Assembly: GCA_035221665.1 (NCBI GenBank)
Contig: CM069160.1
Coordinates: 3,844,001-3,908,000 of the forward strand
Reading direction: 5' to 3'
DNA: 64,000 nucleotides
Source: Okamejei kenojei
Lineage: Eukaryota
A model generated the notes under the pieces. The model did not search any database and was not told the origin of the DNA. It was given only the letters and a program-made list of their open reading frames with translations. Positions 1,135 to 36,092 of this stretch are shown here, one piece after another; the first letter of the stretch is position 1; the number at the start of each line of letters is the position of its first letter. Both the position numbers and the translations under genes were made by a program.

Positions 1135-1190
1135 ATGTTCTTTTTTTTTTACCTTACTGAACACTTACGGTATTGCCACAGTCTCCTCTG
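1135..1190 (+). CDS. MHC class I-like gene, candidate exon 1 (signal peptide), with one extra T in a T10 run
   Basis: ATG at 1135 and strong donor G|GTAAGC at 1190/1191. Removing one T from 1141-1150 gives MFFFFTLLNTYGIATVSS plus a phase-1 G, which joins AT of the alpha1 exon to read VSS|DFHHL, a typical class I leader/mature junction. As assembled the exon is 56 nt and out of phase by 1. Confidence 0.6.
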
Positions 1191-2132
1191 GTAAGCAAAT
1201 GCTGCTTCTACTTGTAAACTTTGAGGAAACAACAAAACTGATTCTATGTTCTGTGCTGCACATTCCCTGTGATTGCCCTGGGTTCATTGTCTTGGTTGTA
1301 TAAATTGAATTATTGAAATTGAATGTATTAATAATTTTTGGGTAAAGGTCATTCCTGAGTTGTGAAGGCTCCAGTGATAAGTTATATATACTATGGTTAC
1401 CTTGGCAATCCATTGAAGAGAAGAAATGAATACAGGTAATAAAGATATAGAACATAGGACAATCAGCAACAGGAGCAGGTCGTTCAGTCCCTTTACTGCG
1501 AGAAAATGGTCTTGACACGAAACGTCACCTATTCTTTTCTCCAGAGATGCTGCCTGACCCCCAAGTTACTCCAGCATTGTGTGTCTACCTTCGGCCCACA
1601 AAGTCTGTACTGAACAAAATAAACTAATCTCCTCTACCTGTATGTGATCCGTATCCGGCCATTCCCTGCCTATCTATGTACCTATCCTAATAAAACGCTT
1701 CTGAAATGAACTGTTATATCTGCCACCACCACCCCCCACTGGCAGCGCATTACAGGTGTCGACCACCTTCCACATAAAACAACTTGCCTCGCTCATCTCC
1801 TTTGAACATTGATTCTCCTGCATTAAAGTGATGTTCTCTGGTCTTCAACATTTCCACCCTGGGAAAACGGTTCTGACTGTCCACTCCGTCTGTGCCTCTC
1901 ACCACTTTATGCACTTTCATCAGGTCTCCCTATCACCTCCAGTATACAAGATAAAACAATCCATGTTTGTCCAATCTGTCCTTGCACTAATTCCTCAGAC
2001 AGAATTCAGGTAAACCGATGATGTGCACTTTCAATAAAGAAGCGACTTCTTCATTAGTAGGTGTCCCACTTCTCCACGATTTCCTCAGCTGGTGTTAGAC
2101 ACACAAATTATGGTAAAAATCAGCCTGCATTA

Positions 2133-2433
2133 AACATAGAAACATACAAACATAGAAAATAGTTTCAGGAGGAGGCCATTCGGCCCTTCGAGCCAGCACC
2201 GCCATTCAATATGATCATGGCTGATCGTCCGCTATCAATAACCCGTGCCTGCCTTCTCCCCATATCCCTTGACTCCACCAGACCCTAGAGCTCTATCCAA
2301 CTCTCTCTTAAATCCATCCAGTGATTTGGCCTCCACTGCCCTCTGTGGCAGGGAATTCCATAAACTCACAACTCTCTGGGTAAAAAAGTTTTTTCTCAGC
2401 TCATTCTTAAATGACCTCCTCTTTATTCTAAGA
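2133..2433 (-). mobile_element. CR1 LINE 3' end
   Basis: FFTQRVVSLWNSLPQRAVEA...GYGEKAGTGY plus tail repeat. Confidence 0.85.
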
Positions 2434-3649
2434 ATGAACAATCAATGTTGTTTTAATGTTGTAGTTATCTTGTTCTGTCTGCTGCATGCTTCCTCTCCTG
2501 CAGACCCTATCCATTACCCCACCACCACTTCCCCAGAAGAGGATAATGGCATTTAAGACGCTTGAGGATAGGCACGTGGATATGCAGGGAATTGAGGGAT
2601 ATGAATCATGTACACGCATGAAGAGTTTAGTTTAACTTGACATCATGATCGGCACAGACATTGTGGCTGAACTCCAGCCCACTGCACCCTTAATGAACAA
2701 AAATCTATCAATCTCAATCTGGAAATTTTCATGTGGGCAACATATTAAACAGATCACAGAATCGAGAACCAGAGGACATAGGTTTAAATTGAAGGGGGGA
2801 AAGATTTAATGGGAATCTGATGGGCAATTTCTTCCCACACAATGGTTCCGTCCTAACTATTCTGACATTCGTCAAGGCTTGGAGATTACAAACCTGTAAT
2901 CGCATGCTCGTCCTGAAGGTTTAATCACATTGTTATCAGATGAAAGTAAATATAATGGTGATTGCCGTGTTGAAATAATACCATATAATACAAAAATCCT
3001 TGGCTGTGGAGTATTTTGGGAAGTCACATGGATTTTATCATTACGGTATTCCACGCGTAGCATTCTTATGTTTCTCCTGGTAACACTGAAACAGACATTT
3101 CTAACTCTCGCTTTGGGGCCCCTTCTCGTCTGACTTAAACACATGGACTTTGACACTGTCTGGTGTGTTGCCTGTAATCTATATCACAGAACAAATATTG
3201 CGTGTTCATGTGGAAACAAGAAACTGCACACGCTGGTTAATACACATAACAGGTCGGGCAGTATGTCTGGAGAACATGGATAGGTGATGTTTCAGTTTAG
3301 ACATCAGTTTAGATGTGCAAGAAGGAACTGCAGATGCTGATTTAAACGAAGATAGACACAAAAAGCTGGAGTAACTCAGCGGGATAGGCTGCATCTCTGG
3401 AGAGAAGAAATGGGTGGCGTTTTGGTTCGAGACGCTTCTTCAGACTGGTGATGCAGATGCTGGTTTACACCGAAGATAGACACAAAAAACTGGAGTAACA
3501 GTAAGTCAGGCAGCAACGCTGGAGAAAAGTAATAGATGGCGTTTCAGGTCAAGGCACTTTTTCGGATCGAGACGGGGGTGCATATCTTTCATTAATATGT
3601 CCTATGTACCTTTTCGTATCACTTGGTTCACTGTCTCCTGATTCTCAGT

Positions 3650-3677
3650 CTGAAGAAGGGTCTCGACCCGAAACGTC
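3650..3677 (+). ncRNA. Minimal type I hammerhead ribozyme-like motif (representative copy)
   Basis: CTGAAGA-A-GGGTC(TC)GACCC-GAAA-CGTC: catalytic core, stem II, palindromic ACGT stem III and GUC site. An identical core lies at 21565-21592. Confidence 0.65.
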
Positions 3678-4125
3678 ACCTTTTGCTTTTCTCCAGAGAT
3701 GCTGCCTGACCCACTGCGTTACTCCTGTAGGCTGTGTTGAGTTTCCGTTTATACCCTGTTTATTATAGCCGTCTCCCAGACCAAGGCATATATTGACCCC
3801 CCACCCCCCCCCCCCCCCCCCCGATAACCGGGACTCACCAGTAAGATCTCCTTTACACTTACTGCTCCAATTTACAGAATCTCAGTGTCCTCATAAGTCA
3901 GAATTGTCCCATTCCATGCAAGCATGTCTTACCAGATGGGCGTTTCAGTGTTGTAGCCCACAGAGATGCTACCTATGAGGACATGGACTCAATCCTGATC
4001 TCGACTACAACTTGTGTGGCATGTTTATTATTTCCCTGAAACCATGCGTGCTTCCTCTGGTTATACCAGTTTCTCCCCACATCCCAAAGAGAGGTAAATT
4101 GGCCAGCGTGAATTGATCGTTCATA

Positions 4126-6379
4126 CAGTGCCCTCCATAATGTTTCGGACAAAGAACAATCATTTATTTATTTGCCCCTGTACTGCAGAATTTGATAGTT
4201 CTCATATAAAAACTCAAATGTGGTTAAAGTGCACATTGTCAGATTTAAAAAAAAGGCCATTATTTTTCATGTTGGTTTCTCCATGTAGAAATTACAGCAG
4301 TGTTTATACATAGTCCCCCCATTTTTGGGGCATCATAATGTTTGGGACACAGCAATGTCATGTAAATGAAAATAGCCATGCTTAGTATTTTGTTGCATAT
4401 CCGTTGCATGCAATGACTGCTTGAAGCCGATGATTCATGGACATCACCAGTTGCTGGGGGTCTTTTCTGGTGATGCTCTGCCAGGCCTGCATTGCAACCA
4501 TCTTTAGCTTATGCTTCATTTGAGGGCTAGTACCCTTCAGTTTATTCTTCAGCATATAAGAGGCATGCTCAGTTTGGTTCAGATCGGGTGATTGACTTGG
4601 CCACTCACAATTTACATTGTTTTAGCTTAGAAAAGCTATTTTGTTGCTTCAGCAATATGTTTGGGATCATTGTCTTGCTGTAGTATGTACCGCCGGCAAA
4701 TATGTGTTTTGACGCATTTGTTTGAACTTGAGCAGATAGGATGTGTCTATACGCTTCAGAATTCATTATGCTTCTACCATCAGTAGCTGAATGTTCAACA
4801 AAGCTAAGTAAGCCAGTACCTTCAGCAGCCATACGTGCCCAGGCCACAACACCCCACTACCGTGTTTCACAGGTGAGGTGGTGTACTTTGGATCTTGGGC
4901 AGTTCCTTATCTCCTCAATATTTTGTTCTTGCCATCACTATGATATGTTAATCTTCGTCTCATCTGTCCATAAGACCTTTTTCCAGAACTGTGGTTGCTC
5001 TTTAAAGTACTTCTTGGCAAACATTAACCGGGTCATCCTATTTTAGCGGCTAAAACGTGGTTTGCATCTTGCAGTGTAGTGTCCGTATTTCTGTTCATGA
5101 AGTCTTCTGCGGACAGTGGTCATTGACGAATCCACACTTGACTCCTGATGAGTGTTTCTGATGTCGGACAGGTGTTTGGGGATGTTTCTTTTTAACAGAG
5201 AGAATTCTTCTGTCATCAGCTGTGAAGGTGTTCCTTGGCCTGCCGGTCCCTTTGCGATTAGTAAGCTCACCATAGAACCATAGAAACATAGAAAATAGGA
5301 GCAGTAGGAGGCCATTCGTCCCTTCGAGCCAGCACCGCCATTCATTGTGATCATGGCCGATCGTCTCCTATCAATAACCCGTGCGTGCCTTCTCCCCACA
5401 TCCCTTGACTCCACTAGCCCCTAGAGCTCTATCTAACTCTCTCTTAAATCCATCCTATGACTTGGCCTCCACTGCCCTCTGTGGCAGGGAATTCCATGAA
5501 TTCACAACTCTCTGGATGAAAACGTTTTTTTTCACCTCAGTCTTAAAAGACCTCCCCTTTATTCTGAGACTGTGGCCCCTGGTTCTGGACTCGCCCAACA
5601 TTGGGAACATGTTTCCTGCATCTAGCTTGTCCAGTCCTTTTATAATTTTATATGTTTCTATAAGATCCCCCTCATCCTTCTAAACTCCAGTCAATACAAT
5701 CCTAGTCTTTTCAATCGTTCCTCATATGACAGTTCCGCCATCCCAGGGATCAATCTCGTGAACATGCGCTGCACTGCCTCAATTACAAGGATGTCCTTCC
5801 TCAAATTAGGAGACCAAAACTGTACACACTACTCCAGATGTGGTCTCACCAGAGCCCTATACAACCAGAGAGCACCAGTGCTCTCTTTCTTCTTAATGAT
5901 GTTCCAATTGGTTGATTTTGGTAAGCCTAACGTTTGGCTGATGTCTTGAACAGTTTTATTCTTGTTTCTCAGACTCATAATAGCTTCTTTGACTTTAATT
6001 GGCACAACTTTGATCCTCATGTTGATAAACAGCAATACAAGTTTCCAAAGGTGTTGGAAAGACTAGGTGCTGAGCTCTCTTATACTCTGCATTAAGGAGG
6101 CATTTAAATACCCAAGAGCAATTATATATACCTGTGAAGCCATGTGTCCCAAACATTATGGTGCCCCGAAATGGGGGGGGGGGGGGAGATTATGTATAAA
6201 CACAGCTGTAATTTCTACATGGTGAAACCAAAATGTGCAAGAAATACCCTTTAATAAAATCTGACAATATGCACTTTGACCACATGCGATTTTTTTTCTA
6301 TTAAATATCTCAAATTGTGGAGTACAGAGGCAAATAAATAAATGATGGGTCTTTGTCACAAACATTATGGCGGGCACTC
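4126..6379 (-). mobile_element. Degenerate Tc1-like DNA transposon interrupted by a CR1 fragment
   Basis: TA-CAGTGCCCTCCATAATGTTT ... AAACATTATGGCGGGCACTC-TA, long IR/DR-type TIRs, and broken transposase remnants (MAWARMAAEGTG, TTVRRRLHE) on the minus strand. Confidence 0.85.
5273..5865 (-). mobile_element. CR1 LINE 3' fragment nested in the Tc1 element
   Basis: LYRALVRPHLE RT C-terminus through the 3' UTR and (TTTCTATG)-type tail. Host sequence CACCA recurs on both sides. Confidence 0.85.
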
Positions 6380-7212
6380 TATGTATTAGAATCTATGGAG
6401 GGGAGGTACTAATGGGAGAATGGAAAGTATTAAATTGGTTAGCGTACCACAAGTATAAATAGGTGTTTGATGGTTACCACGGATTTGGTGGGCTAAAGGG
6501 CCTTTTTATATGCTGTACCCAGAGGCCATAAGTTTAAAATAAGGTGAGAAATATATAATACGAACCTGAGGCGTAGCTTTGTTACACAAAGAGTGGTGGG
6601 TGTACTGAATGAACTGCCGGAGAAGGCAGTTCAGGCAGGTAATATCGCAACATTTAAGAAACATTTAATCAGGTACATGGATAGATAGATTTTGAATGAT
6701 ATGGGCCTTCTCAGAGAGCTGTGGACCCCGCGTCAATTGATGTTTTCAGTTGGAGATTGACAGATTCTTGATCACTACGGGTGTCAAGGGTTATGGTGCG
6801 AAGGCGGGACAATGTGGTTGAGAGGGAGAGATAGAGCAGCCATGATTGAATGGCCGATGGGCTGAATGGCCTATTTATTCTCCTAGGAACTTAAGTACTG
6901 ATGAAATACAGGCAGTGTAGATGGGGCATGTTGGTCGGTGTGGGCAAGTTGAGCCGTAGACCTGATTCCCTGCTGTATGACTCTTTGACTTTACCTCCCT
7001 ATGATTCTATAAAGTCTCTGTGACATTGTCCATGTTCTTAATAAAATAAAATATTCTTCATATTTTGGAATATTGCAACTAGTAGACCATATCGACATGA
7101 TAGACAATAATAGATCTTTGAAGATGGGAATCAATCCAATCGGATCATTCATTGCCTCGACCACAATTGGTGGAATAGGTATCAGAGCCCATCTTGCCTA
7201 CTCTTGAAGATG

Positions 7213-7525
7213 GCTCAGTGGTACAGGGGTAGAATTGCTGCCTTACCGCCCTGACAGCACCAATGCCCAGGTTGGATCCTGACTACGGGTCCTGTCTGTA
7301 CGGTGTTTGTACATTATCCACCTGACTGTGTGGGTTTTTCCCGAGATCTTCAATTCTTCCCACATACCAAAGAAGTACAGGTCTGTAGGTTAATTACCTT
7401 AGTGTAGAATGTAAATTTTTCCTGGTGTGTGTAGGGTAGTGTTAGAGTGTGGGGGTTGCTGGTCAGTGTGGACTCAGTGGGCCGAAGGGCCTGTTTCCAT
7501 GCTGTATCTCTATCTAAAACCTAAA
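7213..7525 (+). mobile_element. tRNA-derived V-SINE/HE1-like SINE (representative copy)
   Basis: tRNA-like head with A/B boxes, V-domain-like core and CR1-like 3' end. Other copies at about 9325-9615(-), 10810-11010(-), 48985-49270(+), 52270-52565(-), 53520-53810(-), 60615-60935(+), 63010-63305(-). Confidence 0.75.
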
Positions 7526-7597
7526 TAAACGGCTCCTGACCCACAATGTCTTCCGATCATCTCCGCCCCCCCCCCCCCCTACAGATGCTGCCTGGCC

Positions 7598-7787
7598 CAC
7601 TGAGTTCCTCCAGCACTTGCATCTGCATGTCCTTATCACCCTCTTATACAAAGTTCTTGTATTGTTAGCAGTTTTAGCAACTTCTTTGAGCACTGAGTTC
7701 CTCCAGCACTTGCATCTGCATGTCCTTGTCACCCTCTTATACAAAGTTCTTGTATTGTTAGCAGTTTTAGCAACTTCTTTGAGCACT
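7598..7787. repeat. 93-bp tandem duplication (2 copies, 1 mismatch)
   Basis: Unit CACTGAGTTCCTCC...CTTCTTTGAG starts at 7598 and 7691, ending about 50 nt before the alpha1 acceptor. Confidence 0.95.
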
Positions 7788-7833
7788 TTACAGTGATGAC
7801 ACAATCAGACTTATTTTTGTTTATGCATTGCAG

Positions 7834-8094
7834 ATTTTCACCATCTTGCATTTTACTACCTGTTGAACCATGGATTGAGTGAGTTGCCTGAGTACAGTAT
7901 GGTGGCAATGTTGGATGACCTTCAGATCGCATATTTTGACAGCACACTAGATCGGGCTGTTCCCAGACAACGATGGATGGCCCAGTCTTTCCCGCAGGAT
8001 CACTGGGCTTCAATGACCATCACAGTGGCAGGTTTTCATGGGATTGTCCGAGGAAATGCGGAGATAGTTTACCAACAGCAACATGGTGTCTCGA
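7834..8094 (+). CDS. MHC class I-like heavy chain, alpha1 exon (261 nt, phase 1-1)
   Basis: Acceptor ttgcAG at 7832-33 and donor GTAAGT at 8095. Encodes (D)FHHLAFYYLLNHGLSELPEYSMVAMLDDLQIAYFDSTLDRAVPRQRWMAQSFPQDHW..., with class I hallmarks H3, D29, Q32, F36-D37-S38, W51, W60. Confidence 0.93.
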
Positions 8095-8966
8095 GTAAGT
8101 GTCCTGACCAGACCTGGGGTAGACACCCAACATGTACTGGAGTATTCTGATAAACTTTGTTATTTATGTAATTATTCCCTCAGTAATAATATTCTGTTAA
8201 TCCAGCATTCCCTCAATATTGGCAACAATCCTCAGAGAGTGTAGCAATCCCAGACAGTGCTACAGCCTTGATGTACTTTCCATCTGCATCGCCTTAACCT
8301 TCAGACTGAGCTGTTGGCTCTGTACCATTGCCCATCTGACAATGCACTTCTTCCTCTGTTCTTTATGTACGACAGTGCAGAAGTCTGAGTTCTACCCTTC
8401 TGACACAGCAGAACTGCTTTAGTGTAACATCCGCAAGATTAAAGCGTCCCCCCCACAAACTTGACGTTAGTCCATGCCCTCAGTATATAGACCATTGATC
8501 ATTGAGTCATTGAGTCACACAGCATGGATATCGGCCATTCTGCTCACTGAATCCACACTGATCATCAATTGTGCTAAGATGGAGTAACAGCAAACTGCAG
8601 ATGCTGCCAACCTGAATTAAAAACAAACTGGAGGAACTCAGTGAGTCAGTCAGCATTCTGTGGAAAAATGGCCAGAAAACATATGAGACCAGGACCATTT
8701 AGTGATGGAGTAGGGTGGAGAAAGTTGGAAAAAAAAGTAGTGTGTGTAGGATAGTGTTAATGTGCGGGGATCACTGGTCGTTGCGGACTCGGTGGGCTGA
8801 AGGGCCTCTTTCCACGCAGTATCTCTAAACTAAAGCTGCTCCTGTGCTGTACAGCTCTATGTTGTGTTCTGTTCTGCCTGTTTGTACCACGCTGAGAACT
8901 GATTTGTTAATTGTCTCTCCTCCCCATCCCCTTCCCCCCAAACCAAATCATCCACCTCAGCCCCAG

Positions 8967-9242
8967 CTGTTTTCTTTGTCCAGGGTTTCTGCGGCTGTGA
9001 AGTGGACAGTGACAATTTCACTGATGGGTTTGTCAGACTGGGTTATGACGGGGAGGATGCCTGTGCTTTCGACAAGGACAGAATGCGCTGGATTGCACTA
9101 AGTCCAGATTTCCAGGTGCTAGTAGATCGGTGGAATGTCAACACCTTCATGAACAAGTATTTCAAAGATCTCCTGGAGAAGGACTGTGTGAAGTGGCTGC
9201 TGATATATCTGGAGTGTGGACAAGAAGCACTACAGAGGAGAG
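8967..9242 (+). CDS. MHC class I-like heavy chain, alpha2 exon (276 nt, phase 1-1)
   Basis: (T)VFFVQGFCGCEVDSDNFTDGFVRLGYDGEDACAFDKDRMRW...KDCVKWLLIYLECGQEALQRR: C101/C164 pair, YDGxD motif, W133, W147, W167, Y171. The acceptor at 8964-66 gives the canonical 276 nt; an in-frame alternative lies at 8958-60. Donor GT at 9243. Confidence 0.93.
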
Positions 9243-10441
9243 GTATACGGCGTATGCACTCTGACTGGTAGATAGATCAGGTGGGAAATATCCTGCACTT
9301 CAGGCTGTCACTTGAGCAATTGTTAGTTTAGAGATACAGTTCGGCAACAGGCCCTTTGGCCCACCGAGACCGCACCGACCAGCGATGCCCGCAAACTAAC
9401 ACTATCCTGCACATAATAGGGACAATTTGCATTTATACCAACCTAATTAACCTGCAAATTTGTACGTCTTTCGAATGTGAGGGGAAACCGAAGATCTTGG
9501 ATAAAACCCACGCAGGTCATAGGGAGAACGTACAAACTCTGTAAAGGCAAGCACCCGTAGTTAGTAACAAGCCCGCGTCTCTGGCGCTGTAAGGCAGTCT
9601 CTCGACCGCTTCGCCACTCTGTTCTTGGACGAGGTTATCAGTAAAGTCTGGCAACGTGCCTCTTAGATGGATCCAGTGGGATGGAAGTGCAAGTGAAAGA
9701 TAAATATTGCACCAGTGTCCTCTATCCACAGTCACGTAGATATTCGGGAAATGGAGGGATATGTACCTTGGCCTTATGTTCAGCACCGACCTTGTGGCCT
9801 GAAGGGTCTGTTGCTGTGCTGATCAGAAACCGAATCAGATTCTCCATTTTCCTCTATTACTCCTTAGGATGGTGACATCCAATTTCCAACAGTTCTCTGG
9901 TTGAAGAACTTCTTCCTCCCATTCCCTCTTGGAATATGTTATTATTATTGCGTTATTATTCAGCAGAGATTCATGAACAAGTAGAAGCAATCTTGTCTAC
10001 AGTATCAATCCCAATGGTGAGTTATACTCCTCCATTGGGCACTGCAATCTCCTTCCGCCTGCGCTGTCAGCTAAAGTCTGGAGCCAAGATAAAGAGCGTG
10101 TCATTGATATTAAAACGAAATGTTTTGTTGTTTTGTTAGAAATGCAAAAAGAAAAGAGAAAAGGCTGGAAACTTTGTGCAAGATAGAACTGCAGATGATG
10201 GTTTACACCGAAGATAGAAGATGTTGGAGTAACTCAGTGGGTCAGGTAGCATCTCTGGGCATTCCTTCTCTCCAGACATGCTGCCTCATCTGCTGAGTTA
10301 CTCCAGCATTTTGTGTCTGGGCTGGAAACTTTGTTCAGCTAGAGAAAATTTCTGATAGGGAAAGAGGTGAGTTGGAGTGATCTTACAATTCAAGGCTTTT
10401 CTTCATGTCTTCACTAATTCTGACGCTTCTTCTACTTGCAG

Positions 10442-10714
10442 AAACCCCTGAGGTGGTTATTGGGATTAAACGTGATGGGTCGCAATCACTGAGACTCTCC
10501 TGCCTTGTCACAGGCTTCTACCCACCGACCATTGATGTAACGTGGCTGAAGGATGGTGAGGGGGTGCCCGGGTCTGAATCCAGTGATCTGTTGCCTAATT
10601 GGGATGGGACTTACCAGCTGAAGAATACAATTCAGCTGAGTGGAGAAGATGTGGCAACATTCTCCTGCTACATCGAACATGCAACTCTGCTGCAGGGAGT
10701 CAATGTTCCACAGG
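10442..10714 (+). CDS. MHC class I-like heavy chain, alpha3 (Ig C1-set) exon (273 nt, phase 1-1)
   Basis: Acceptor gcAG at 10440-41 and donor GTAAGT at 10715. LSCLVTGFYPPTIDVTWLKDG...LLPNWDGTYQ...FSCYIEH is a C1-set domain with the class I LPNxDGTYQ motif. Confidence 0.95.
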
Positions 10715-11144
10715 GTAAGTGGCAAGTCAATGAATCTGATCACTTGAGACCAGACACCTCCGGGACTGACATAACAGCGTCAACTCACACTCTTACCTAA
10801 TCTGTGGATTTAGACTTTCCACTTTAGAGATATGGTGCAGGAACAGGCTCTTCAGCTCACTGAGTCCTTGCCGAACAGAGATCATCCCGTACATTTACAC
10901 TGGGGGCAATTTACAATTTTACCTAAGCCAATTAACCTTTAAGCCCGTATTTCTTTGGAATGTGGGAGGAAACGGGAGCACCCAGACAAAACCCACGCAG
11001 TCACTGGGAGAAACCAATTTTATGATAGTAGCTAGTTACACAAAAGGCTAGTAGTGATGCCATAACCGACCCCATTATCAGTCTGAAGTAGCAGCACCTG
11101 TTCTGTCGCTGACTTATTTGTTCCAGACAAGACCTCTGCAAAGA

Positions 11145-11700
11145 TCTCAAGATCAAGAGTTCAAGAGAATGTTGTCATGTTGTCATGTTGTCAGATAGGA
11201 CAATGAAATTCTTCCTTTGCTTCAGCACAAGAGAATATGGTAGGCATGAATACAGAACATATCAGTGTGTCCATATACCATTATATAAATTATACACACA
11301 TGAATAAATAATAGATAAAGTGCAAATAAAAAGAAAATGGGCTATTAATGTTCAGAGTTTTGTTTGAGTTGAGTTCAATAGCCTGATGGCTGTGGGGAAG
11401 AGGCTGTTTCTGAACCTTGACGTTGCACTCTTCAGGCTCCTGTACCTTCTCCCTGAAGGTAGCAGGGTGATGAGTGTGTGGCCAGGATGATGTGGGTCCT
11501 TGATGATGCTGCCAGCCTTTTTGAGGCAGCGACTGCGATAGATCCCTCGATGGTAGGGAGGTCAGAGCCGATGATGGACTGGGCAGCGTTTACTACGTTT
11601 TGTAGTCTTTTTCGTTCCTGGGCACTCAGGTTGCTGAACCAAGCCACGATGCAACCGATCAGCATGCTCTCTATTGTGTACCAGTAGAAGTTAGAGAGAA
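11145..11700 (-). mobile_element. Rex1/Babar-like LINE 3' fragment
   Basis: LIGCIVAWFSNLSAQERKRLQNVV remnant with a (CTCTTGA)-type tail; same family as 38890-41135. Confidence 0.7.
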
Positions 11701-11812
11701 GTTAGAGTCAGCTTGGCCTTTCACGCCAGGGCGAAGCTGACATGGTTACAATTGCTGGTCAGTACGAATAGGCAGTAATGTTAATGTCTGAGTGTGCGCT
11801 CATGTGGGTGAG

Positions 11813-12068
11813 NNNNNNNNNNNNNNNNNNNNNNNNNNNNNNNNNNNNNNNNNNNNNNNNNNNNNNNNNNNNNNNNNNNNNNNNNNNNNNNNNNNNNNNN
11901 NNNNNNNNNNNNNNNNNNNNNNNNNNNNNNNNNNNNNNNNNNNNNNNNNNNNNNNNNNNNNNNNNNNNNNNNNNNNNNNNNNNNNNNNNNNNNNNNNNNN
12001 NNNNNNNNNNNNNNNNNNNNNNNNNNNNNNNNNNNNNNNNNNNNNNNNNNNNNNNNNNNNNNNNNNNN
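11813..12068. other. Assembly gap (N run)
   Basis: N run inside the alpha3-TM intron. Confidence 1.
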
Positions 12069-12443
12069 CAGCAATTTAAAACCTTTGAAGTGTTATCATC
12101 TATAAATGGGTTAACTTTTATTTGTTATAATAACAATTGTCAACATAAGAAAATAGCCTTGTTGACCTCTACACTGCAAATAATCTATTTATGACGTACT
12201 TGATTCTTTAAATTCTTAATTAAATGCTGCAGATAAAATCACAAAGCCACAATGCTAATATGATTTTTAAAGATTTTCATCGATTTTTTTTAAACACATC
12301 TATCGTCTGGACAATTACATAAATCTAAAACGTTATTACTTTGTAATTAGATATGAACAGTGCTAGTTTAATGTAGATAATAAAATAATTACAAAGTTGC
12401 TATTGATCAATAAATGTTTAAATTGCACTATATATGACTACAG

Positions 12444-12673
12444 AGAGGGCAGCGAAAGAAGATATAAAGATTAGGATCGTGACTGGAGCTGTAATCTTTC
12501 CTCTTATTCTCGTGGGGATCATCATTGGAATTGATTGCTGGATGAAGAGGAAAAGGAGAAAAACTCTCAATGAACAGGGACCAGCTAAGAACCGCAGAGA
12601 CCAGGAGAGGACTGCATTGACCATGAAGCACAATCAGCTTCCTTTGGGATGCAGAGGAGGTCTACCGGAATGA
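12444..12673 (+). CDS. MHC class I-like heavy chain, single TM plus cytoplasmic exon with stop codon
   Basis: Phase-1 acceptor ctacAG at 12442-43, in frame with alpha3. Hydrophobic IVTGAVIFPLILVGIIIGIDCWM is followed by basic KRKRRK; TGA at 12671-73. Candidate AATAAA at 13148-53. An assembly gap lies in the preceding intron. Confidence 0.75.
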
Positions 12674-13105: not shown

Positions 13106-13284
13106 TCCCGGTGATTCTGAGCTCATTCATTGGAATCCACATTTTGGAATAAAAGGTCGGCCATTTGATTGATTGATTGATTAATACGTTATTGTCACGT
13201 GCGTCAAGTCACAGTGACATTATTCGTTTTGCAAAACATGCACAAGGTATATAAAGTTACAAAGTAATCATTACAGTCCCCAAT

Positions 13285-13960
13285 GGTCCGTTTTTGTTCT
13301 CCGCAGCCCCTCCATGTTGGCTTCACCTGTGTTGTAAGCGCCACCTCCCAACCCCGGGCCCCTCTTTGTTGTCGGCAGCCCCTCCATCTTGGGTTCACCT
13401 GTGTTATATGCGCCCCCCCTCCCAATCCCGCATCCCTCTTTATTCTCGGCAGCCGCTCCATGTTGGATTCACCTGTGTTATCCATGCCCTCCCAACCCCG
13501 GGACCCTCTTTGTTCTCAGTAGCCCCTCCATGTTGGGTTCACTTGTGTTATCGGCGCCCCTCCCCCAACCCCGGGAACCTCTTTGTACTCCGCAGCCCCT
13601 CCATGTTGGGTTCACCTGTGTTCTCAGCGCCCCCCCTCCCCCAAACACGGGACCCTCTTTGTTATCGGCAGCCCCTCCATGTTGGATTCACCTGTGTTCT
13701 CAGCGCCCCCCTCCCCCAAACACGGGACCCTCTTTGTTATCGGCAGCCCCTCCATGTTGGGTTCACCTGTGTTATCGGCGCCCCCCCCCCAACCCCGGGA
13801 CCCTCTTCATTCTGGGCAGCTCCTCCATGTTGGGTTCACCTGTGTTATCGGCGCCCCCGCCCCAACCCCGGGACCGTCTTTATTCTAGGCAGCTCCTGCA
13901 TGTTGGGTTCACCTGTGTTATCGGCGGCCCCCAACCCTGGGACCCTCTTTGTTCTCTTCG
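13285..13960. repeat. GC-rich minisatellite, about 60-bp unit, about 11 copies
   Basis: Unit GCAGCCCCTCCATGTTGGGTTCACCTGTGTTATCGGCGCCCCCC..CCGGGACCCTCTTTGTT. It explains the overlapping repetitive ORFs here. Confidence 0.95.
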
Positions 13961-16293
13961 TTTTCGGTAGACCTCTCATGTCGGGTCCCTGTTTAAAATA
14001 GATACGAAGAAGATTTATTTTTCAGGAGGTGTATGATTTGCCTGAACTTTCTATTGCAGCTGTGAAGACAAGGTGAATGACTATTTTCCAGGTTGAGATA
14101 TATAGAGTTTTAGATCAGAAATGTATCAAAGATTGCAAGAACTGTGCAGTAAACTGATCAAAATCAGATTGGACATTGAAGTTATTGAATGATGCCGTCT
14201 GTTCAAGGGGGATTACAACTGATCACTAATCTTATTTTACATAAAATATTAAGAAGTACATCTCAGGAAGAGGCCCTTTGGCCTACAATGTCTGTGGTGA
14301 ACATGGTGAGATTCTGAACTTATCCCATCTAACTGCAACATGATCCATATCCCCTTACTTCCTGCAGATCAAATTGTCAATCTAAAAGCCTCTCACATGT
14401 CATATAGTTATCTTGCCGGAGATAGACACGAAAAGCTGGGAAACTCACCGGATCAGACAGCATCTTTGGATACAAGGCATAGGTGACATTTCGGGTCGAG
14501 ACCCTTCTTCAGACTGAGAAATGCAGTTTGACCCGCTTATTGAGCCTATCTTCGGGTTACTCCAGCTTTTTAAGCCTATCTTCGGGTAAAACCAGCATCT
14601 GCAGTTCCTTCCTAGTTATTTTGCCACTTCTCTTTGTCACATACTGTAACCTGCATTCCGTGTTCACATACCTGATGGTGTAGTGGAGAAGTAATTGCCT
14701 TTGCATGTAATGCTTCACTCAGTGCTTCAAGTATTTGATGGGCCAGTCAACAAGGATCTTTGTTTTCAATACGAACCACGCTCTACACCACAGTTTAGAT
14801 AATATTGCTTAGTTTAGTTGAGAAACCTTTGAGATGTGCAAGGAAACTGGAGCACCTGGAGAAATGCCACGTGGAGAACATGCAAATTCCACAGAGACAA
14901 TATCCCAGTACCCTGCCATGTGAGTATTTATGGAACACGGTAAGTATGGGGCCTGTGTTTTATTGACCCTACAGAGCACGGGGAACAATACTCATTATCA
15001 AAACTGTGGTATAATAGCTGTGGAAGTGTTTTATGTGCAACAGACCGAGAATTTCATTGTATATCCACCAGTGTCATTTCTGAATTATGAGCGTTTAAAA
15101 AATACGTTTGAATGAGTTTGCAGGCATCCACCATTCTCTGGGTAACATTGAAATAAGCATGTTCAGCCATTCTGAGAATAGGAGCGAATTGGCTCAGAGT
15201 GATAACAGAGCAAAATTATTAGTTTAGTTTAGTTTAGAGATAAAGGTTGGAACAAGCCCTTCAGCCCACCGAGTCCGCACTGATTTCCGCACACTAACAT
15301 TAGTCCAGATCAAACCCGGCTGTGGCACTTAATGCAGCAACTCCAGTGCTGCACCGCCATGTTGCCCTTATTGTTGTCGGATGTGCAGCGAATGGAGGTA
15401 TATTATGTGCAGGCTAATAAGAGTTGGTCTTGACATCCTGTTCAACACAGACATTGTGGGCCAAAGGGCCTGTTCCAGTGCTGTGGAGGGGACCAGGGGA
15501 CAGCGGAGGGACAATTTCTTGGCGGCCGTGCGCATGCGCAAAATCACACACACACGCCAGGCATCGGTAGCTTCAGCCTTCAAGCAGCTTGAAAGTGTCA
15601 TGAAGAAGGGTTTCGGACCGAAACGTCGCCCGAAACGACGCCTATTTCGTTCGCTCCATAGATGCTGCCGCACTCGCAGAGTTTCTCCAGCATTTTTCTC
15701 TATCTTCGATTTTCTAGCATCTGCAGTTCCTTCTTGAACATGTCCTATATTATGTTGCCCAGCATGACGTCCAGTGTTTTTTTTTTAATCTGTGGTAACT
15801 GTAGTATGGATACCGAGCTATTAAACCAAGCAATATATAAATGAACTGAATTATATGCAACCTAAAACTTTGTATTCTTGGATGTATTAAACATTTTTAC
15901 CCCAATTGCCAGCTGTAAAAATAGAGGGTGTCAATTAGTTAATAAAATTGCTTTCTAATCTGCAGAGAGCATTTGGTCTCTGTAATTGCTTGTTTTGTTG
16001 CCTTTGTAACTGTCATGCACGAAATTTTGTTTAAACTTGTTTGAATAAAAATAAAGGAAATTCGATTCAATTCAATGTACAGGTGTCGGTTCCCTCTCTC
16101 TATTTGCCAAATGTATTTTAGATTCTCATGTGGCTCATGGGATACGGTTTATTGGTGAAACATTTAGCTTGTGCGTTTGCCAACATGTGGATAGCTCATC
16201 ATTGAAGATTACGTCAGTTATTGTCCTCTGGCAGTTTAGACACTACTTTGGCATTGGGCTTGGTGTTCTTGCTTGAGCGCTTATCCTGATGTT

Positions 16294-17631
16294 ATAACCA
16301 TATAACCATATAACAATTACAGCACGGAAACAGGCCCTCTCGGCCCTTCCAGTCCGTGCCGACCATTTGTTTTCCCCTAGTCCCATCTACCTGCACTCAG
16401 ACCATACCCCTCCATTCCCTTCACGTCCATATACCTATCCACTTTACTCTTAAATGTTAAAATCGATCCTGCCTCCACCACTTCTGCTGGAAGCTGATTC
16501 CACACAGCCAGCACCCTCTGAGTAAAGAAGTTCCCCCTCACGTTACCCGAAACCTCTGTCCCTTAATTCTCATGTCATGCCCTCTTCTTTGAATCTTCCC
16601 TACCCTCAATGGGAAAAACGTATCCACGTCAACTCTGTCTATCCCTTTCATCATTTTAAAGACCTCAATCAAGTCCCCCCTTAACCTTCTGCGCTCCAAA
16701 GAATAAAGACCTAACTTGTTCAACCTTTCTCTGTAACATAGTTGCTGGAACCCTGGCAACATTCTAGTAAATCTCCTCTGTACTCTCTCTATTTTGTTGA
16801 CATCCTTCCTATAACTAGGCGACCAAAATTGTACACCATACTCCAGAATTGGTCTTACCGATGCCTTGTACAATTTTAACATTACTTCCCTACTCCTATA
16901 TTCAATGCTCTGATTTATAAAAGGCCCAGCACACCAAAGGCTTTCTTTACCACCCTATCTACATGCGATTCCACCTTCAGGGAACTATGCACAGTTATTC
17001 CTAGATCCCTCTGTTCCACAGCATTCCTCAATTCCCTACCATTTACCATGTACGTCCTATTTTGATTTGTCCTGCCAAGATGTAGCACTTCACACTTATC
17101 AGCATTAAACTCCATCTGCCATCTTTCAGCCCACTTTTCCAAATGGCCCAAATCTCTCTGTAGATTTTGAAAATCTACTTCATTATCCACAACACCACCT
17201 ATCTCAGTATCATCTGCATACTTACTTATACAATTTTTCCACCCCATCATCCAGATCATTGATGTACATGACAAACAACAGTGGACCAAACACAGATCCC
17301 TGAGGCACCCCACTGGTCACCGGCTTCCAACCTGACAAACAGCCATCCACCATTACTCTCTGACATCTCCCATTCAGCCACTGTTGAATCCATCTTGCTA
17401 CTCCGCCATTAACACCCAAAGATTGAACCTTCTTAACCAACCTTCCATGGGGAACCTTGTTTAAGGCCTTACTAAAATCCATATAGACAACATCCACTGC
17501 TTTACCCTCATCAATTTCCCTAGTTACCGCTTCAAAAAATTCAAGAAGGTTTGTCAAACATGACCTTCCAGGCACAAATCCATGTTGACTGTTCCTGATC
17601 AGACCCTGTTTATCCAGATGCTTATATATAT
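16294..17631 (-). mobile_element. 5'-truncated young CR1 LINE (family A)
   Basis: RT motifs GVPQGS and YADD, (TATGGTTA)n tail; nearly identical to 27187-28518. Confidence 0.95.
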
Positions 17632-18528
17632 AGCACAATCTAGCACGTTATAGCACAATCACTATGTGTATTAATGGTAAATCATAATTGATATTAGCTC
17701 AATGTTACTGAGCATGTTATCAAACCAGAGAGACGCCAGGAACTGCAGATTCTGGCACTTTGAGCAAACCATTAACTGCTGGAGGAACTCACCGGGTCAG
17801 GCAGCATTTCTGGAGAATGGAATAGGTTACATTTTGGGTCTGAAGAAGGCTCTCGACCCAAATCGTCGCCTTTTCCCTTTCTTCGGAGATGCTGCCTGAC
17901 CTGTTGAGTTACTCCAGCTTTTTGTGTCTATGAAAGAACGCACTCTTTTCTTTCTACATTGTTCCACTCCAAATTAAAAACTAAAGAAGAAATTGAACTG
18001 CATTGTATGTTTTCCTAATTATCAAACGATTGGGGCGTGGGACATAGGTTCTAACAAACATTGCAACAGCGGGTTAGGCTGTTAATGTTAAACAGCATTA
18101 GGAAAATAGCCGGCCCGGAAAACAAAACCATTGCGGTTTGAGTTGATCAAAATATAACTGTTTACATCATTCAATGCGTGGGATGGAACTGCAGATGCTG
18201 GTTTATACTGGAGACAGACACAAAATGTTGGAGTAACTCAGCGGGCCAGGCAGCATCTCTGGCGAGGAGTGGGCGATGTGTCTCGTCAGGACTTTTCCTT
18301 CACAGATGCTGCCTGACCCGCTGAGTTACTCCAGCATTCTGTGTCTACTATTCGCACCATTGGTGTCAGTGGGACGATTCTTACAGATTCGCTTGTACCA
18401 AGGGAGGTGCATTGAATGTTGTAACTTCTCTGCGCCACGTATCGGTGGAGTTTTTGTTTCAGACCGTGTTTGTTCGTGAAAGTGATCACTAATGCAACCG
18501 AGTATACCCTTCCTGAGTACCATCGCGT

Positions 18529-18598: not shown

Positions 18599-19244
18599 GG
18601 GGAGCACACTGCGTTGCTCCTACCAAGTAAAAGGAAGAGACTTCGAGACTAGCCCGGGCCTCCAGCGATAACAGACCCACGAGGTACCCCGAGTACAACT
18701 CGTGGTTGTGTACGAGACTTCAAGTTTATGTTCAAGTGTTTAACCGAGTTCCCACGGGTATGTCATTTCTGCGATGTTCCAAGTTCCTCCTCCGAGTTAC
18801 CAAGTTCCTCTCCCGTTACTCTTGAGCCAAACGTGAATTAATAAAGCAACAATGTTAAAATACATCTCCATCCTGTGGCTTTGAGTTATTTCAGCGCGGC
18901 CGCATCTATTAATACGAGCTACAAAGGGAAAATGCGCACCCTCCAGTAACCAATAACGTGGTAAGTGCATTTCTTGGTGCTTTATGTTTTAAATACTGTA
19001 TTTCCCGGGGTGGGGGGAGAGCTCAGTTCATAGTATTTGGGGAGTCTGGCGTTGTGAAGGAGGGGATTGGGGTTAGTAACCCACTTGCCACGGTCCAGTC
19101 TGAGTGCAGGTAGATGGGACTAGGTGACAGTAAACGGCACGGAGTAAAAGGGCAGAGATGGCCTGTTTCTATGCTGTCATTGCTATATGGTTTTATTGTG
19201 GCCGGGGAGTGAATTAGCTTGGTTGGCAGCCGCAGCGCTCCGGG

Positions 19245-19342
19245 CACGGACAGCAGAACTGGCCGCCACTTCCGATGAAGGAAGCAGCTCGGGTGACTGA
19301 CTTTGAGCGGCCGCCGGGACCCGACAGCAGATACACACACAG

Positions 19343-19416
<74 letters not shown>

Positions 19417-19501
19417 GCGCGCGGACAGCAGAACTGGCCGCCACTTCCGAGGAAGGAAGCAGCTCGGGTGACTGATTTTGAGCGGCCGCCGGGATCCGAC
19501 A

Positions 19502-19549
<48 letters not shown>

Positions 19550-19624
19550 ACAGATACACACAGACAGCAGAACTGGCCGCCACTTCCGAGGAAGGAAGCA
19601 GCTCGGGTGACTGACTTTGAGCGG
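19245..19624. repeat. Tandem repeat of a CpG-rich unit separated by (CA)n microsatellites, running into a gap
   Basis: GACAGCAGAACTGGCCGCCACTTCCGA.GAAGGAAGCAGCTCGGGTGACTGA.TTTGAGCGG occurs three times (about 19249, 19424, 19563). Confidence 0.9.
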
Positions 19625-19803
19625 NNNNNNNNNNNNNNNNNNNNNNNNNNNNNNNNNNNNNNNNNNNNNNNNNNNNNNNNNNNNNNNNNNNNNNNNNNNN
19701 NNNNNNNNNNNNNNNNNNNNNNNNNNNNNNNNNNNNNNNNNNNNNNNNNNNNNNNNNNNNNNNNNNNNNNNNNNNNNNNNNNNNNNNNNNNNNNNNNNNN
19801 NNA
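19625..19803. other. Assembly gap (N run)
   Basis: N run. Confidence 1.
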
Positions 19804-20595
19804 CCCTTCTTCAGACAATCCAATGTCCAAAAATATATTCTTTAAATATTAAGGTTTCTGTTGAAAGTGTGGTGCCGTGGTTACGGGTGGGCGGAAGGAA
19901 GATGATGAGGTCTGGTACAAGTTTACTTTGTTTTCAGTAATCAGGCCTCCGTGTTGGCTGATGCCTGGTTGTTCAAACAGTTGCGAGCGAGCGAGGTCCA
20001 TATATAGAAGCAAGGAACGCGAAGCCTCTGAGGGTTCATTGTTCCCCTGGTTTGGATTGCTCCCAGGAGACCGGGCACAAAGACAAATTTAGGCATTTTT
20101 CTGTGGAAGGGGGAGCAGAATAGAATCGAAAGCATTGTAACAGCAACACTCTCCCCAACACGAAACACAGCGCAGCGTAAACAATTAAACAGCTTCACTT
20201 TTAAAAGCAAAGACACACGTTAAATTACATGGCCCCAAGAAATCGCCTCTCAATTGCTTCGAGTTGGAATTGAAATATATATAATATATATAATATGTAT
20301 ATACATATTATACTACAAATACATATATATATTATATATACTGCAATTGTGAGAATGGTGAATCTGTGGAATTCTCTGCCACAGAGGGTAGTTGAGGCCA
20401 GTTCCTTGGCTATATTTAAGAGGGAGTTAGATGTGGCCCTTGTGGCTAAAGGGATCAGGGGGTATGGAGAGAAGGCAGGTACAGGATACTGAGTTGGATG
20501 ATCAGCGATGATCATATTGAATGGCGGTGCAGGCTCGAAGGGCTGAATGGCCTACCCCTGCACCTATTTTATATGTTTCTAAGTTTCTATATATG

Positions 20596-22872: not shown

Positions 22873-23773
22873 CTAATTTATTTTTAAAAACCGGACAATA
22901 ATAATAAATGGATATGCTATCACTTTCTTCGCTTCCTCCCGGAACCTCCTCTGGACATGAGCATAAATACACGTGTTTGTACAGGAACTCAAATACATTA
23001 GCAGAAGCGCTATTCTAATCGCAAGATAAAGGGACCTCGGGGCGTTGACCGCAAAACTCTGCGTGACTTCGAAACACAAGTCGAGTATCATAACCGGAGT
23101 CCACAGCGCAGTGAAGCTCCCCGAGATGGCAAATAACAGAATGATTGAAGTCCTCCGGTTTCTGATCTCGGGATCACAGATATTACCGTCCACGCGGCGC
23201 TTCAGGGCGCTGCGAATTCGACTGACCTGTACAATGTGTCCGACGGTCAGTGAATTTAACAGCAGTACCAGCGGCAGTGGCAGCAGTGGTACCAAAAGTT
23301 TGGAGAACCATTTGTACGTCTTCCATGCGGTCGATGTAGCATATTCTGCAACTGTATGGCAGCCCCATCGTATATCACCGGCAATATAGCTGGGCTCATA
23401 CCGAAAATAAACTGGAATATGGATCAAAAAGCTGCACAAACACACTGTCGTTAGAATCACTGCGGCGGTTCTCTCGGTGCAGTATTTTGATTTTAATTTC
23501 TGGCAACAAATGGCGAAGAAGCGGTCGACTGTGAATGACACTGTGGACCAGACGGAGAATTGTACGCAGGATATTTGTATAAAGGATGTAAGGCGACACG
23601 TACAGGTGTATGCCAGGAATGAATCCGGAAAATGATACCTGAGGACGTTCCCGACGGTGACATTAAATATACAGACCATTGATCCGCGACTGCCATAGTT
23701 AGCATGTAACGGATGACCACTTTGGAGAGGCCGCACATTCCCCGGGACAGGACCACGAGAGAGAGAACGTTTG
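22873..23773 (-). pseudogene. GPR139-like class A GPCR, exon 2 (rest of TM1 to TM7), 1-nt frameshift near 23680
   Basis: Acceptor ttacAG at 23774-75. ANVLSLVVLSRGMCGLSKVVIRYMLTMAVAD then shifts frame into MVCIFNV...SVWSTVSFTVDRFFAICCQKLKSKYCTERTA...LSSCTNTCIYA. These motifs are typical of the GPR139/142-like receptors expanded in cartilaginous fish. Pseudogene versus sequencing error is unresolved. Confidence 0.85.
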
Positions 23774-24519
23774 CTGTAACAAGATGACAAGGCAGGTCAT
23801 GACCAGAGAGAACCCCCCAGCATCGAGAACGTGTCTCTGGTCACGGGAACGCTGGGAATAACCGAACCGGGAACATTGTAACTGGTGCAGTCAATATTGC
23901 AGGGCCGACATCATTGGCTGTGTGAAGGGGAACGATGTGGGATATTCAACAACAGACCAATTGCCCTCATCGACCGGGTATGGGGCTAAGTGACAGGTTG
24001 CAGCTTCATAGCTACTTTCTACCTCACTGGGGACCCTCGGACTATATTTGATCAGACACACAGCATCTCTGGAGAAAATGAATAGGCATTCCTGCCATTC
24101 ATTTGTCCTAAATGCCGTCTATATCTCTCGTTCCAATCCCCCCCTGAAGAAGGGTCTCGACCCGAAAGCGTCACCTATTCCTCCACAGATGCTGCCTGAC
24201 CCGCCGATTTACTTCAGCTTTTGAACCTGTCTTCGGTTTAAACCAGCATCTGTAGCTACATATTTTTGATCGGACTTTACTGGACTTTATCTTGCACTGT
24301 ACGTTATTCACGGTATTATCTGTGTCATGTATTTGTTCACTGTGGGTGGCTCGGCTGTAATCATGCATTGTCATTCCGCTGACTGGTTAACACGCAAGAA
24401 AGGCTTCACTGTACCTCGCTACACGTGACAAGAAAGTAGACTAAAACTCAAAAGAGGAGATACTCCTGAATACAGATAATCTGAAGTAAAGCGACGGAGG
24501 TGACAACAAAATAACTCAC

Positions 24520-28962: not shown

Positions 28963-29608
28963 AATTGTGTAAAGTATGTACGGCCTGGTCAATTTGCGAA
29001 ACATTATCTCGATACATGAGATAATGGTAATCCAGTACTAATACCAAGACTGCTGATTATCAATAAAATATAACTGTTTCACCTCTGCACCATTTTTCGA
29101 TCCTTCACTCCACATGTCTTAATTTCTTAGGGTACATAACCTTTCAAATCTATTTTTTGAATAAACAAGGCCCGAACCTCCAGGGCCTTCCAGGGTAGAG
29201 AATTCTGAAGACTTTATTTCTTTATCCGTTGCACCTTACAAGGAGAAAGGATTGTTTTCTTATCTTAGTCGTAAATGCCCTGTCCAATTTTCTACCAATC
29301 TGTCTGACTGGGTCTAGACTACTCTGCCACAGGAAACATATACCCTACAAACAACCAAACGAGCACCTTCAAAAAGTTCCAAAGAGATCATGCCTTATTT
29401 TTTTTAATTGAAGAGAATGTAGTGGTCTACTCAACCACTCATCACTGACCTAACCCAACATTCATAGAATCTTATGAAGATACAATATATTTAATTCAAG
29501 ATGGCTAGACTACAAAACAGGGATGTAATGTTGAGGCTCTACAAGGCCTGGTCAAGCTGCATTTGGAATATTGTGAGCATTTTTGGGCACCATATCTGAG
29601 GAAGGATG

Positions 29609-33216: not shown

Positions 33217-34186
33217 CTAAGAATCACAGAGAACCCAATACTGCGTGTCCAAAGCCTGGTACCGGAGAACAGGTTTATCGTAGAACTTTGAAAAAGTTTC
33301 TTCTTTACACCACCCTGTGGCCTCTAAAATTTGATCGAGTGGCACGTCCTGTACCTTCGCCGCGGATGTAGCTGCTGCCCTGGTGGAGTGAGATTTAAAC
33401 ACATCAGTGTCTACTCCTGCTAAATCCAAAACCTGTTTTAACCATCTAGAAATGGTTTGTACTGATACTTTTGTATGTGGTTTTATGTGCATATCAATAA
33501 CGCTGTCTCACCATCCCGAAGACTCTTGGTTACTTCAATATATTGAGTCAACTACACATGGTGTTTTGATCAACAGGGTAAGTTTTAAACATTACCTTTG
33601 TTCCAGTTTTCCCTGCTATGCTTTGTTTGATTAGATCATAAACATAAAACACAATGTTATCTGAAGCCATATGCATGCAATCTAAACGCAACATTTGCAA
33701 TGTTTGTACTCTTTGTGCTGACACTAATGCCATTAACATAACGACTTTAAATGTTAACTTCTGTAAAGACATTGACGTGATTGGAGTCCATTGCCTAAGC
33801 AAAGTAAGCACAATGCTGACATCCCAAATTTCTTGATACCTTGGTCTGGGAGGATTTCTATTAAAAAGCCCTTTCATAAACCTGGATATTAATGGATGAG
33901 ACCCGATTGATTCACAGTCAGAAATGTGTCCTAAATAGGAGGATAAAGCACTACGAGCACTATTATTGGCACTATAGCTTAAGTGCTGATCAAAATGCAA
34001 CCCAGCAAGGAACTCCAATACATTTGATATGTTCACACTATGATAAGATATATTTGACTGTCTACAAAAGACTTCCCATTTCTTTATATGCGACATATAT
34101 TGTTTTTTAGTGCTATCTCGCCAAGCCAAAGCTATAACATCCATGGTCCTATCGGACAGTCCAAGCCCTTGCAGTGGTCTGGTCAA
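33217..34186 (-). pseudogene. DIRS tyrosine recombinase, frameshifted
   Basis: ARSALS, PPRPRY..IWDV, SAQRVQTL (catalytic R), HSTR, W..EETFSKFY. Confidence 0.9.
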
Positions 34187-36070: not shown

Positions 36071-36092
36071 GGAGGTTCATCCAAAGATTCTT

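Follow-up and report, generated by a model that had tools for sequence, protein, structure and literature searches.

In cartilaginous fishes, the nonclassical class I genes UDA (single copy), UEA (multicopy) and UFA have been placed in a cluster within the major histocompatibility complex (MHC), termed MHC-Ib, between b2m/brd2 and col11a2/rxrb, and UFA has been described as CD1-like (PMC10751288). A 2025 review states, as a personal communication, that UFA and UGA are suggested by crystal structures and mass spectrometry to bind CD1d-like lipids (PMC12562908). Both genes are represented among solved structures, the titles of which we took from structure-search output: PDB 9CH4 is 'shark nonclassical MHC class I, UGA' (released 2026-03-18), and PDB 8GM8 is 'shark nonclassical MHC class I, UFA' (released 2024-11-27). 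Here we compare with these systems a class I gene in a 64,000-nucleotide stretch of the genome of the skate Okamejei kenojei (GenBank assembly GCA_035221665.1, contig CM069160.1, positions 3,844,001 to 3,908,000), the whole of which we call the window. Window positions 1135-12673 (+) hold one real five-exon MHC class I-like gene with leader, alpha1, alpha2, alpha3 and transmembrane/tail exons (Table 1). Its relationships are best explained if it is the skate orthologue within a long-standing and conserved shark and ray MHC-Ib lineage of single or low-copy genes, which is sister to UGA and probably lies in the MHC-Ib cluster.

The exons were read directly from the Okamejei kenojei sequence, and their translations were used singly in all searches and aligned singly with 61 database proteins (orthologues, UGA-like, UFA-like, carp classical and others). 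Pfam recognizes MHC_I in the translations of alpha1 (E 1.9e-5) and alpha2 (1.3e-14) and C1-set in that of alpha3 (9e-16). The signature of the class I fold family is present as a whole, with these domains accompanied by C101 and C164, a transmembrane anchor and an arrangement of one domain per phase-1 exon. Phase-1 introns join the leader, alpha1, alpha2, alpha3 and transmembrane exons throughout, and phase-1 internal introns are general in class I genes. A tblastn search with shark and ray class I proteins found no second class I gene in the 64-kb window.

When the alpha1 exon was compared with 1.84 billion representatives, it had a single close match at 93% identity (P0001), the little skate protein XP_055486430.1, which has been automatically named 'MR1-like, partial'. 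Identity to this protein is 93, 95, 87 and 80% in the alpha1, alpha2, alpha3 and transmembrane/tail exons, respectively, with the C-terminal match running to the last residue. A search with the little skate protein in turn returned a graded series of orthologues at 54-72% identity, for which annotations already exist in at least 17 species of rays and sharks. Those in rays come from sawfish, manta and devil rays and two stingrays, placing the lineage in five ray genera; those in sharks come from sawshark, sevengill, two catsharks, zebra, epaulette and bamboo sharks, smooth-hound, and basking and white sharks. There is usually one orthologue per assembly, on the chromosome that carries other class I genes. 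Maximum-likelihood analysis of the 61 proteins recovers the lineage as a clade with 100/100 support whose internal branching follows the split between rays and sharks, and its sister, at 97/72, is a group of proteins about 70% like 9CH4, which we refer to as UGA-like. In trees built per exon, every window exon nests in a 15-row clade with support by the Shimodaira-Hasegawa-like approximate likelihood ratio test (SH-aLRT) of 99/99/96 (99 for alpha1). The preliminary description of this locus had raised the possibility of a new lineage, and in that form the suggestion is not supported, as each exon falls within a clade of genes annotated in at least 17 species.

The sawfish member of the clade, LOC127585976, is marked as MHC-Ib in the supplement of a 2023 paper (PMC10751288). 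It lies between b2m/brd2 and col11a2/rxrb, beside TRIM39-like genes and a block of GPR139-like genes. We found no structure or ligand study of the lineage in the PDB or in the literature searched. The little skate also has a second 'MR1-like' model on another contig (XP_055486496.1, P0182), which is scrambled, is made up solely of pieces of alpha2 and alpha3, and represents either a duplicate in decay or a haplotig.

In comparison with known class I systems, UGA is the nearest solved relative of the lineage. The best solved match is 9CH4 (E 2.9e-60, 39% identity, Z 26), and the little skate orthologue scores 207 bits against 9CH4, 164 against MR1, 144 against carp classical, 139 against nurse shark classical (6LUP) and 115 against 8GM8. 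UGA and the lineage share the motifs L-N-H-G..L-P-E-Y-S in strands 1-2, A-G-F-H-G in the alpha1 helix and M-N-x-Y-F-K-x-L-L-E-K-D-C in the alpha2 helix, as well as one extra residue between W147 and C164 and the residues L159, G97 and A123. Both are MHC-linked, with UGA copies 0.8-1 Mb away from the window gene in the Okamejei kenojei genome. Yet UGA forms a separate 100/100 clade, and the little skate has both genes on one 127-kb contig; because both are present in skates as separate clades, they are paralogues. UGA also differs in keeping Y7, Y59 and K146 and in having a less apolar groove (mean hydropathy 0.09-0.88 among UGA-like sequences, compared with 1.38 for the window gene). The skate UGA tail ends in ...D-Y-Q-N-I..., an endosomal YxxΦ motif, whereas such a motif is absent from the tails of all 13 members of the window lineage examined. 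We therefore rejected membership in UGA, the window gene being sister to the UGA-like clade, not inside it, and having no YxxΦ in its tail. UFA is likewise nonclassical and MHC-linked and is similar in the N-terminal half of alpha1 (M-L-D-D-L-Q-I..Y-D-S..P-R-Q-x-W-M-A), but the 8GM8 match reaches 115 bits against 207 for UGA, and the basking shark protein that is UFA-like (52% identity to 8GM8) falls outside the clade on a long branch by itself. Identity with UFA was rejected on these two grounds.

Like CD1 of mammals, birds and reptiles, the window gene has an apolar groove without clamps for the peptide ends, and its mean groove hydropathy of 1.38 is near the 1.18 of CD1b, the alignment of which is unreliable. 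It differs from CD1 in being MHC-linked, in having no endosomal tyrosine motif and in showing no sequence relationship specific to the two: MHC_I_3, the CD1-type model of Pfam, reaches 21.7 bits against a cut-off of 35, and MHC_I scores 54.6. With MHC_I_3 below its cut-off and no YxxΦ, CD1 membership was rejected; a likeness to CD1 in function is still conceivable. MR1 chains are the best solved matches of the alpha2 exon (E 2e-15), aligning without gaps and with equal helix length. In MR1, K43 forms a Schiff base with vitamin B metabolites; this position aligns with alanine in the little skate orthologue, to which the window gene is identical at the site, and the tree groups the gene with shark UGA, not with tetrapod genes. 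Identity with MR1 was rejected on both counts, and RefSeq assigned the name automatically from a best hit. Chicken YF1*7.1 resembles the window gene in being nonclassical with a hydrophobic groove and in its tied fold score (Z ~26), but identity is 28%, there is no phylogenetic link, and the fold score is common to all class I molecules.

Two further genes could be compared through their descriptions. UDA is attributed to Almeida et al. (2020, J Immunol 204:892); UEA dates from 2021 and is reportedly absent from rays. UDA is alike by description only, as a single-copy gene of the MHC-Ib cluster, the interval in which the sawfish orthologue of the window gene lies. The window lineage may be UDA; no author-named UDA protein was among the protein-search matches. 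UEA is multicopy by description, in contrast to a lineage with one gene in 64 kb here, one per assembly in most species and a presence in five ray genera, and it was rejected as a single or low-copy lineage found in rays does not correspond to it.

The groove of the window gene was examined in HLA-A2 numbering by our own mapping, with the carp classical sequence P0020 as the alignment anchor. The residue assignments of the preliminary description held up in the alignment. Among the anchors of the peptide termini, W147 and Y171 are kept, and F7, H59, Q84, A123, L143, R146 and L159 stand in place of the others; the carp classical sequence has Y7, Y59, R84, T143, K146 and Y159. Position 86 lacks an N-x-S/T sequon. 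Residues of the fold and of the beta2-microglobulin contact are present (H3, D29, W60, Q96, D119-G120-x-D122 and C101/C164), and so are the groove residues M24, M63, V67, F70, I73, V74, I80, V81, G97, C99, V114 and L116. The anchor set of classical peptide presenters (Y7, Y59, Y/R84, T143, K146, W147, Y159, Y171) is thus not found as a set. The alpha2 domain carries a new sequon, N-F-T in the window and N-S-T in all relatives.

Of 36 groove-facing positions in the window gene, 26 are apolar, with a mean Kyte-Doolittle hydropathy of 1.38, and values across the whole clade range from 1.1 to 1.55. None of the other class I sequences among the 61 compared has so apolar a groove set as this clade: beyond the UGA-like range given above, the mean is 0.48 for UFA-like, 0.39-0.48 for carp classical and -0.19 to 0.99 for 32 other shark class I sequences. 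Across the clade, from skate to white shark, 19 of the 36 positions are invariant, including the small floor residues G97, C99 and A123 and a few polar rim residues (H59, N77, Q84, R146, K155 and D163). Identity between skate and sharks over alpha1/alpha2 is about 70%. As judged from these alignments, the conservation pattern is that predicted of a monomorphic molecule, the opposite of classical class I.

At the start of alpha2, only the AGs at 8959-60 and 8965-66 preserve the frame with donor 8094/8095. A start at 8961 agrees with the little skate model and the 9CH4 alignment and supplies V-Q, including Q96; a start at 8967 gives 276 nt, the usual alpha2 exon length. The AG at 8982-83 was rejected as an acceptor, since the resulting exon (8984-9242, 259 nt) has a frameshift that makes the gene seem a pseudogene and the orthologue and 9CH4 alignments point to 8961 or 8967. 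We take the alpha2 junction to be as assembled because no indel is seen at 8959-8990 in DNA contigs from another sample of this species (X5) or from two sister species (X6 and X7, ~96% identical). The acceptor of the transmembrane exon (ctacag/, the slash marking the border) yields g+ag = E, in frame with alpha3. The assembly gap in the preceding intron, 11813-12068, hides no exon to judge from sequence comparison, because the exon ends on both sides of it are phase 1 and the little skate, sawfish and shark orthologues pass from the alpha3 end ...V-P-Q directly into E-R-A-A-K... with no residues between. The tails of three shark orthologues (P0171, P0268 and P0259) have tandem D-Q-Q-R-L-A-E-T-like units, and the skate tail has one related copy, R-D-Q-E-R-T-A-L-T, at about 12590-12620 of the window.

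The leader exon was placed only through comparison with shark leaders. In frame 0, the exon reads ...F-F-F-T-L-L-N-T-Y-G-I-A-T-V-S-S/(D), and the residues encoded at 1151-1188 match the sawshark and sevengill leader M-L-L-V-T-L-L-N-V-Y-C-V-P-x-V-S-S/D through the shared T-L-L-N-x-Y...V-S-S/D. The leader thus lies where the preliminary description had put it, with the amendment that its ATG at 1135 is out of frame by +1. Nine T in place of the ten at 1141-1150 would restore the frame as M-F-F-F-F-T-L-L-N..., and three-frame translation revealed no other in-frame ATG in the leader exon. A scan upstream of alpha1 gave no convincing candidate for an ATG-started hydrophobic leader with a phase-1 donor. 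Among the RefSeq orthologue models, a signal-peptide-like leader is found in sawshark and sevengill only; the remaining 5'-complete models begin in upstream exons unrelated to it, and several others are cut short at the 5' end. The leader exon, short and distant, seems often to be missed by automatic annotation.

Four read runs were mapped to window positions 4901-10900; one of them, X20, is RNA by a guess at its type and shares its species label with the best-matching DNA runs. One X20 contig has a match that starts exactly at 7834, the alpha1 acceptor, and reaches 8064, with 21 unplaced letters at its 5' end. Another covers 10441-10714 and continues past the alpha3 donor with 38 letters at odds with the intron sequence, and therefore the donor is used. 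X20 depth is zero in the unique parts of introns (8101-8500 and 9901-10100). The X20 contigs show the pattern of spliced RNA, and the gene is transcribed and spliced. The preliminary description had made its lipid reading depend on transcripts, and RNA-like contigs with their limits at the alpha1 acceptor and at the alpha3 donor were found. The mapped runs also yielded nine listed exon differences among individuals and sister species, seven of which are synonymous, and the gene evolves under purifying selection. The other two change amino acids and set the window assembly apart from every mapped run, another sample of the species included: F in place of S at 9018, in the alpha2 N-x-T sequon, and V in place of F at 10456, where alpha3 begins. 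Either private alleles or errors of assembly would account for them.

For the whole chain we used the AlphaFold model of the natural little skate orthologue XP_055486430.1. Its predicted local distance difference test score (pLDDT) is 81, with values above 90 in the platform, and it has the class I fold, at Z 26 to 9CH4. Fold scores do not discriminate function here, with chicken BF2 and YF1*7.1 equal to 9CH4 and 50 entries at Z 24-26.

The hydrophobic, non-peptide type of groove proposed in the preliminary description stands as a deduction, supported by the most apolar groove set and by UGA as the nearest solved relative. A hydrophobic ligand is the best reading for the lineage because its alpha1 and alpha2 helix motifs are shared with UGA. 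On this sequence evidence it is plausible, with the balance tilting slightly in favor, that the gene product binds a lipid or another hydrophobic ligand. Several observations weigh against it. Invariance in the groove is not significantly above that of the rest of alpha1/alpha2 (19/36 versus 58/143, p 0.19), and the bulky residues F7, F70, F152, W147 and W167 could fill the groove instead of lining a cavity. The claim that the sister lineage binds lipids rests on a personal communication (PMC12562908). In the RNA-like contigs of X20, the alpha2 exon was not recovered and depth is low (~4). Finally, after the ATG at 1135 come TTC and ten T, which leave this start codon +1 out of frame with the remainder of the leader.

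Some of these observations could be read differently. The molecule might present hydrophobic or acylated (lipo)peptides, like chicken YF1*7.1 and Mamu-B*098, and not free lipids: the orthologue model fits YF1*7.1 with N-myristoylated ligands (Z 25.5-26.0) as well as it fits UGA, and the retained W147, Y171, R146 and N77 could hold a short peptide backbone. We consider this improbable, however, with Y7, Y59, Y/R84, T143 and Y159 all substituted and with fold Z scores that do not separate one class I molecule from another. Similarly little credence is given to a ligand-free groove in which the apolar residues pack the helices and the conserved surface serves as an invariant ligand or carrier, as in FcRn, HFE, ZAG or MIC-type molecules. 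Conservation of the entire alpha1/alpha2 platform between skate and sharks, not of the groove alone, would agree with such a role, as would the frequency of large aromatics among the groove residues, but the floor residues G97, C99 and A123 are small and invariant, tending to open space, and the sister lineage UGA is reported to carry lipids.

The displaced start codon bears on another account, in which the gene is a recently disabled pseudogene or null allele in Okamejei kenojei, its start codon out of frame with the signal peptide. The ten T shift the ATG by +1, and the leader offers no alternative ATG in frame. In the little skate, the RefSeq model is itself 'partial' and without a leader, and the window carries two private amino-acid variants. 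Yet the other four exons are open with intact canonical splice sites, spliced RNA-like contigs were found, and synonymous differences outnumber nonsynonymous ones by 7:2. A 10-base homopolymer is moreover a classic site of assembly error, and leaders are mispredicted in most of the shark and ray orthologues. Loss of function in this species is accordingly unlikely in our assessment.

Table 1. Exons and other mapped features of the class I gene in the Okamejei kenojei window (a slash marks an exon border)
Feature	Window positions	Strand	Remarks
Leader (signal peptide) exon	1135-1188	+	Donor tctg/gtaagc, phase 1; ~6.6 kb upstream of alpha1
Run of 10 T	1141-1150	+	Inside leader; direct reading and three-frame translation
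alpha1 exon	7834-8094	+	261 nt, phase 1 to 1; Pfam MHC_I
alpha2 exon	8961-9242	+	282 nt; alternative in-frame acceptor gives start 8967, 276 nt; Pfam MHC_I
alpha3 (C1-set Ig) exon	10442-10714	+	273 nt; Pfam C1-set
Assembly gap (N)	11813-12068		Within the alpha3-transmembrane intron
Connecting piece, transmembrane and cytoplasmic tail exon	12444-12673	+	Stop 12671-12673

The neighbors of the gene in the window are a GPR139-like seven-transmembrane open reading frame (ORF) and a TRIM exon with RING and B-box, and genes of the same kinds lie near the sawfish gene; the gene order differs, and the window ends before b2m/col11a2. The GPR139-like gene is at 22873-23790 (-), and about ten such genes form the block beside the sawfish class I orthologue. 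The TRIM-type first exon, with a C3HC4 RING and a B-box, is at 52770-53363 (+), and TRIM39-like and A33-like genes flank the sawfish orthologue.

Three copies of a long interspersed nuclear element (LINE) with endonuclease and reverse-transcriptase ORFs were found at 16538-17638 (-), 25908-28500 (+) and 29583-32388 (+), the longest matching RVT_1 at 8e-33. Their conserved 3' tail recurs within introns of the class I gene, near 2235-2441 and 5455-5610, and read depth there is extremely high. A run of ORFs at 33217-37267 (-) has a phage-integrase SAM-like match, though a weak one (E 8e-4), and resembles a DIRS-type tyrosine-recombinase retroelement. At 39635-40714 (-) there is a Tc1/mariner-like transposase (DDE_3, 1e-12) with a helix-turn-helix-like ORF upstream. 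The sequence bordering a second assembly gap (N), at about 19180-19850, contains a long (GT)n/(CA)n microsatellite together with a repeated unit. Immediately downstream of the class I gene, at 13200-14000 (+), a tandem repeat with long ORFs and a recurring P-P-C-W-V-H-L-C-Y-like unit is probably a satellite or minisatellite.

The gene product would pair with beta2-microglobulin, and its groove would lack polar clamps for the peptide ends and have invariant apolar side chains along nearly all of its lining, over a floor of the small residues G97, C99 and A123. A groove that is clamp-free, apolar and invariant would be expected to hold one conserved kind of hydrophobic ligand, such as a lipid, a lipopeptide or a small apolar metabolite, for an invariant receptor. 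As no tyrosine sorting motif is present in the tail, loading would probably take place in the secretory pathway or at the cell surface and not in endosomes, unlike in UGA or CD1b/d. A bolder proposal, which we regard as possible though rather doubtful, is that the lineage is the third, unnamed and structurally unsolved member of an ancient shark and ray trio with UFA and UGA, having the most apolar and conserved groove of known cartilaginous-fish class I molecules and no endosomal signal.

The automatic 'MR1-like' name misleads genome annotation, and the conservation of alpha1/alpha2 between skate and sharks together with the single copy would make the gene a clean target for refolding, lipidomics and tetramers. 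Should the proposal of a trio be true, the molecule would be loaded at the surface or in the endoplasmic reticulum and would present a single conserved lipid or lipopeptide to an invariant T or natural killer-like receptor, and a division of labor among lipid presenters, as from CD1a to CD1d, would predate the split between sharks and rays. If the groove does hold lipids, cartilaginous fishes would have at least three MHC-linked presenters of hydrophobic ligands (UFA, UGA and the lineage described here) that differ in their trafficking signals, which would bear on when lipid presentation and innate-like T cells arose.

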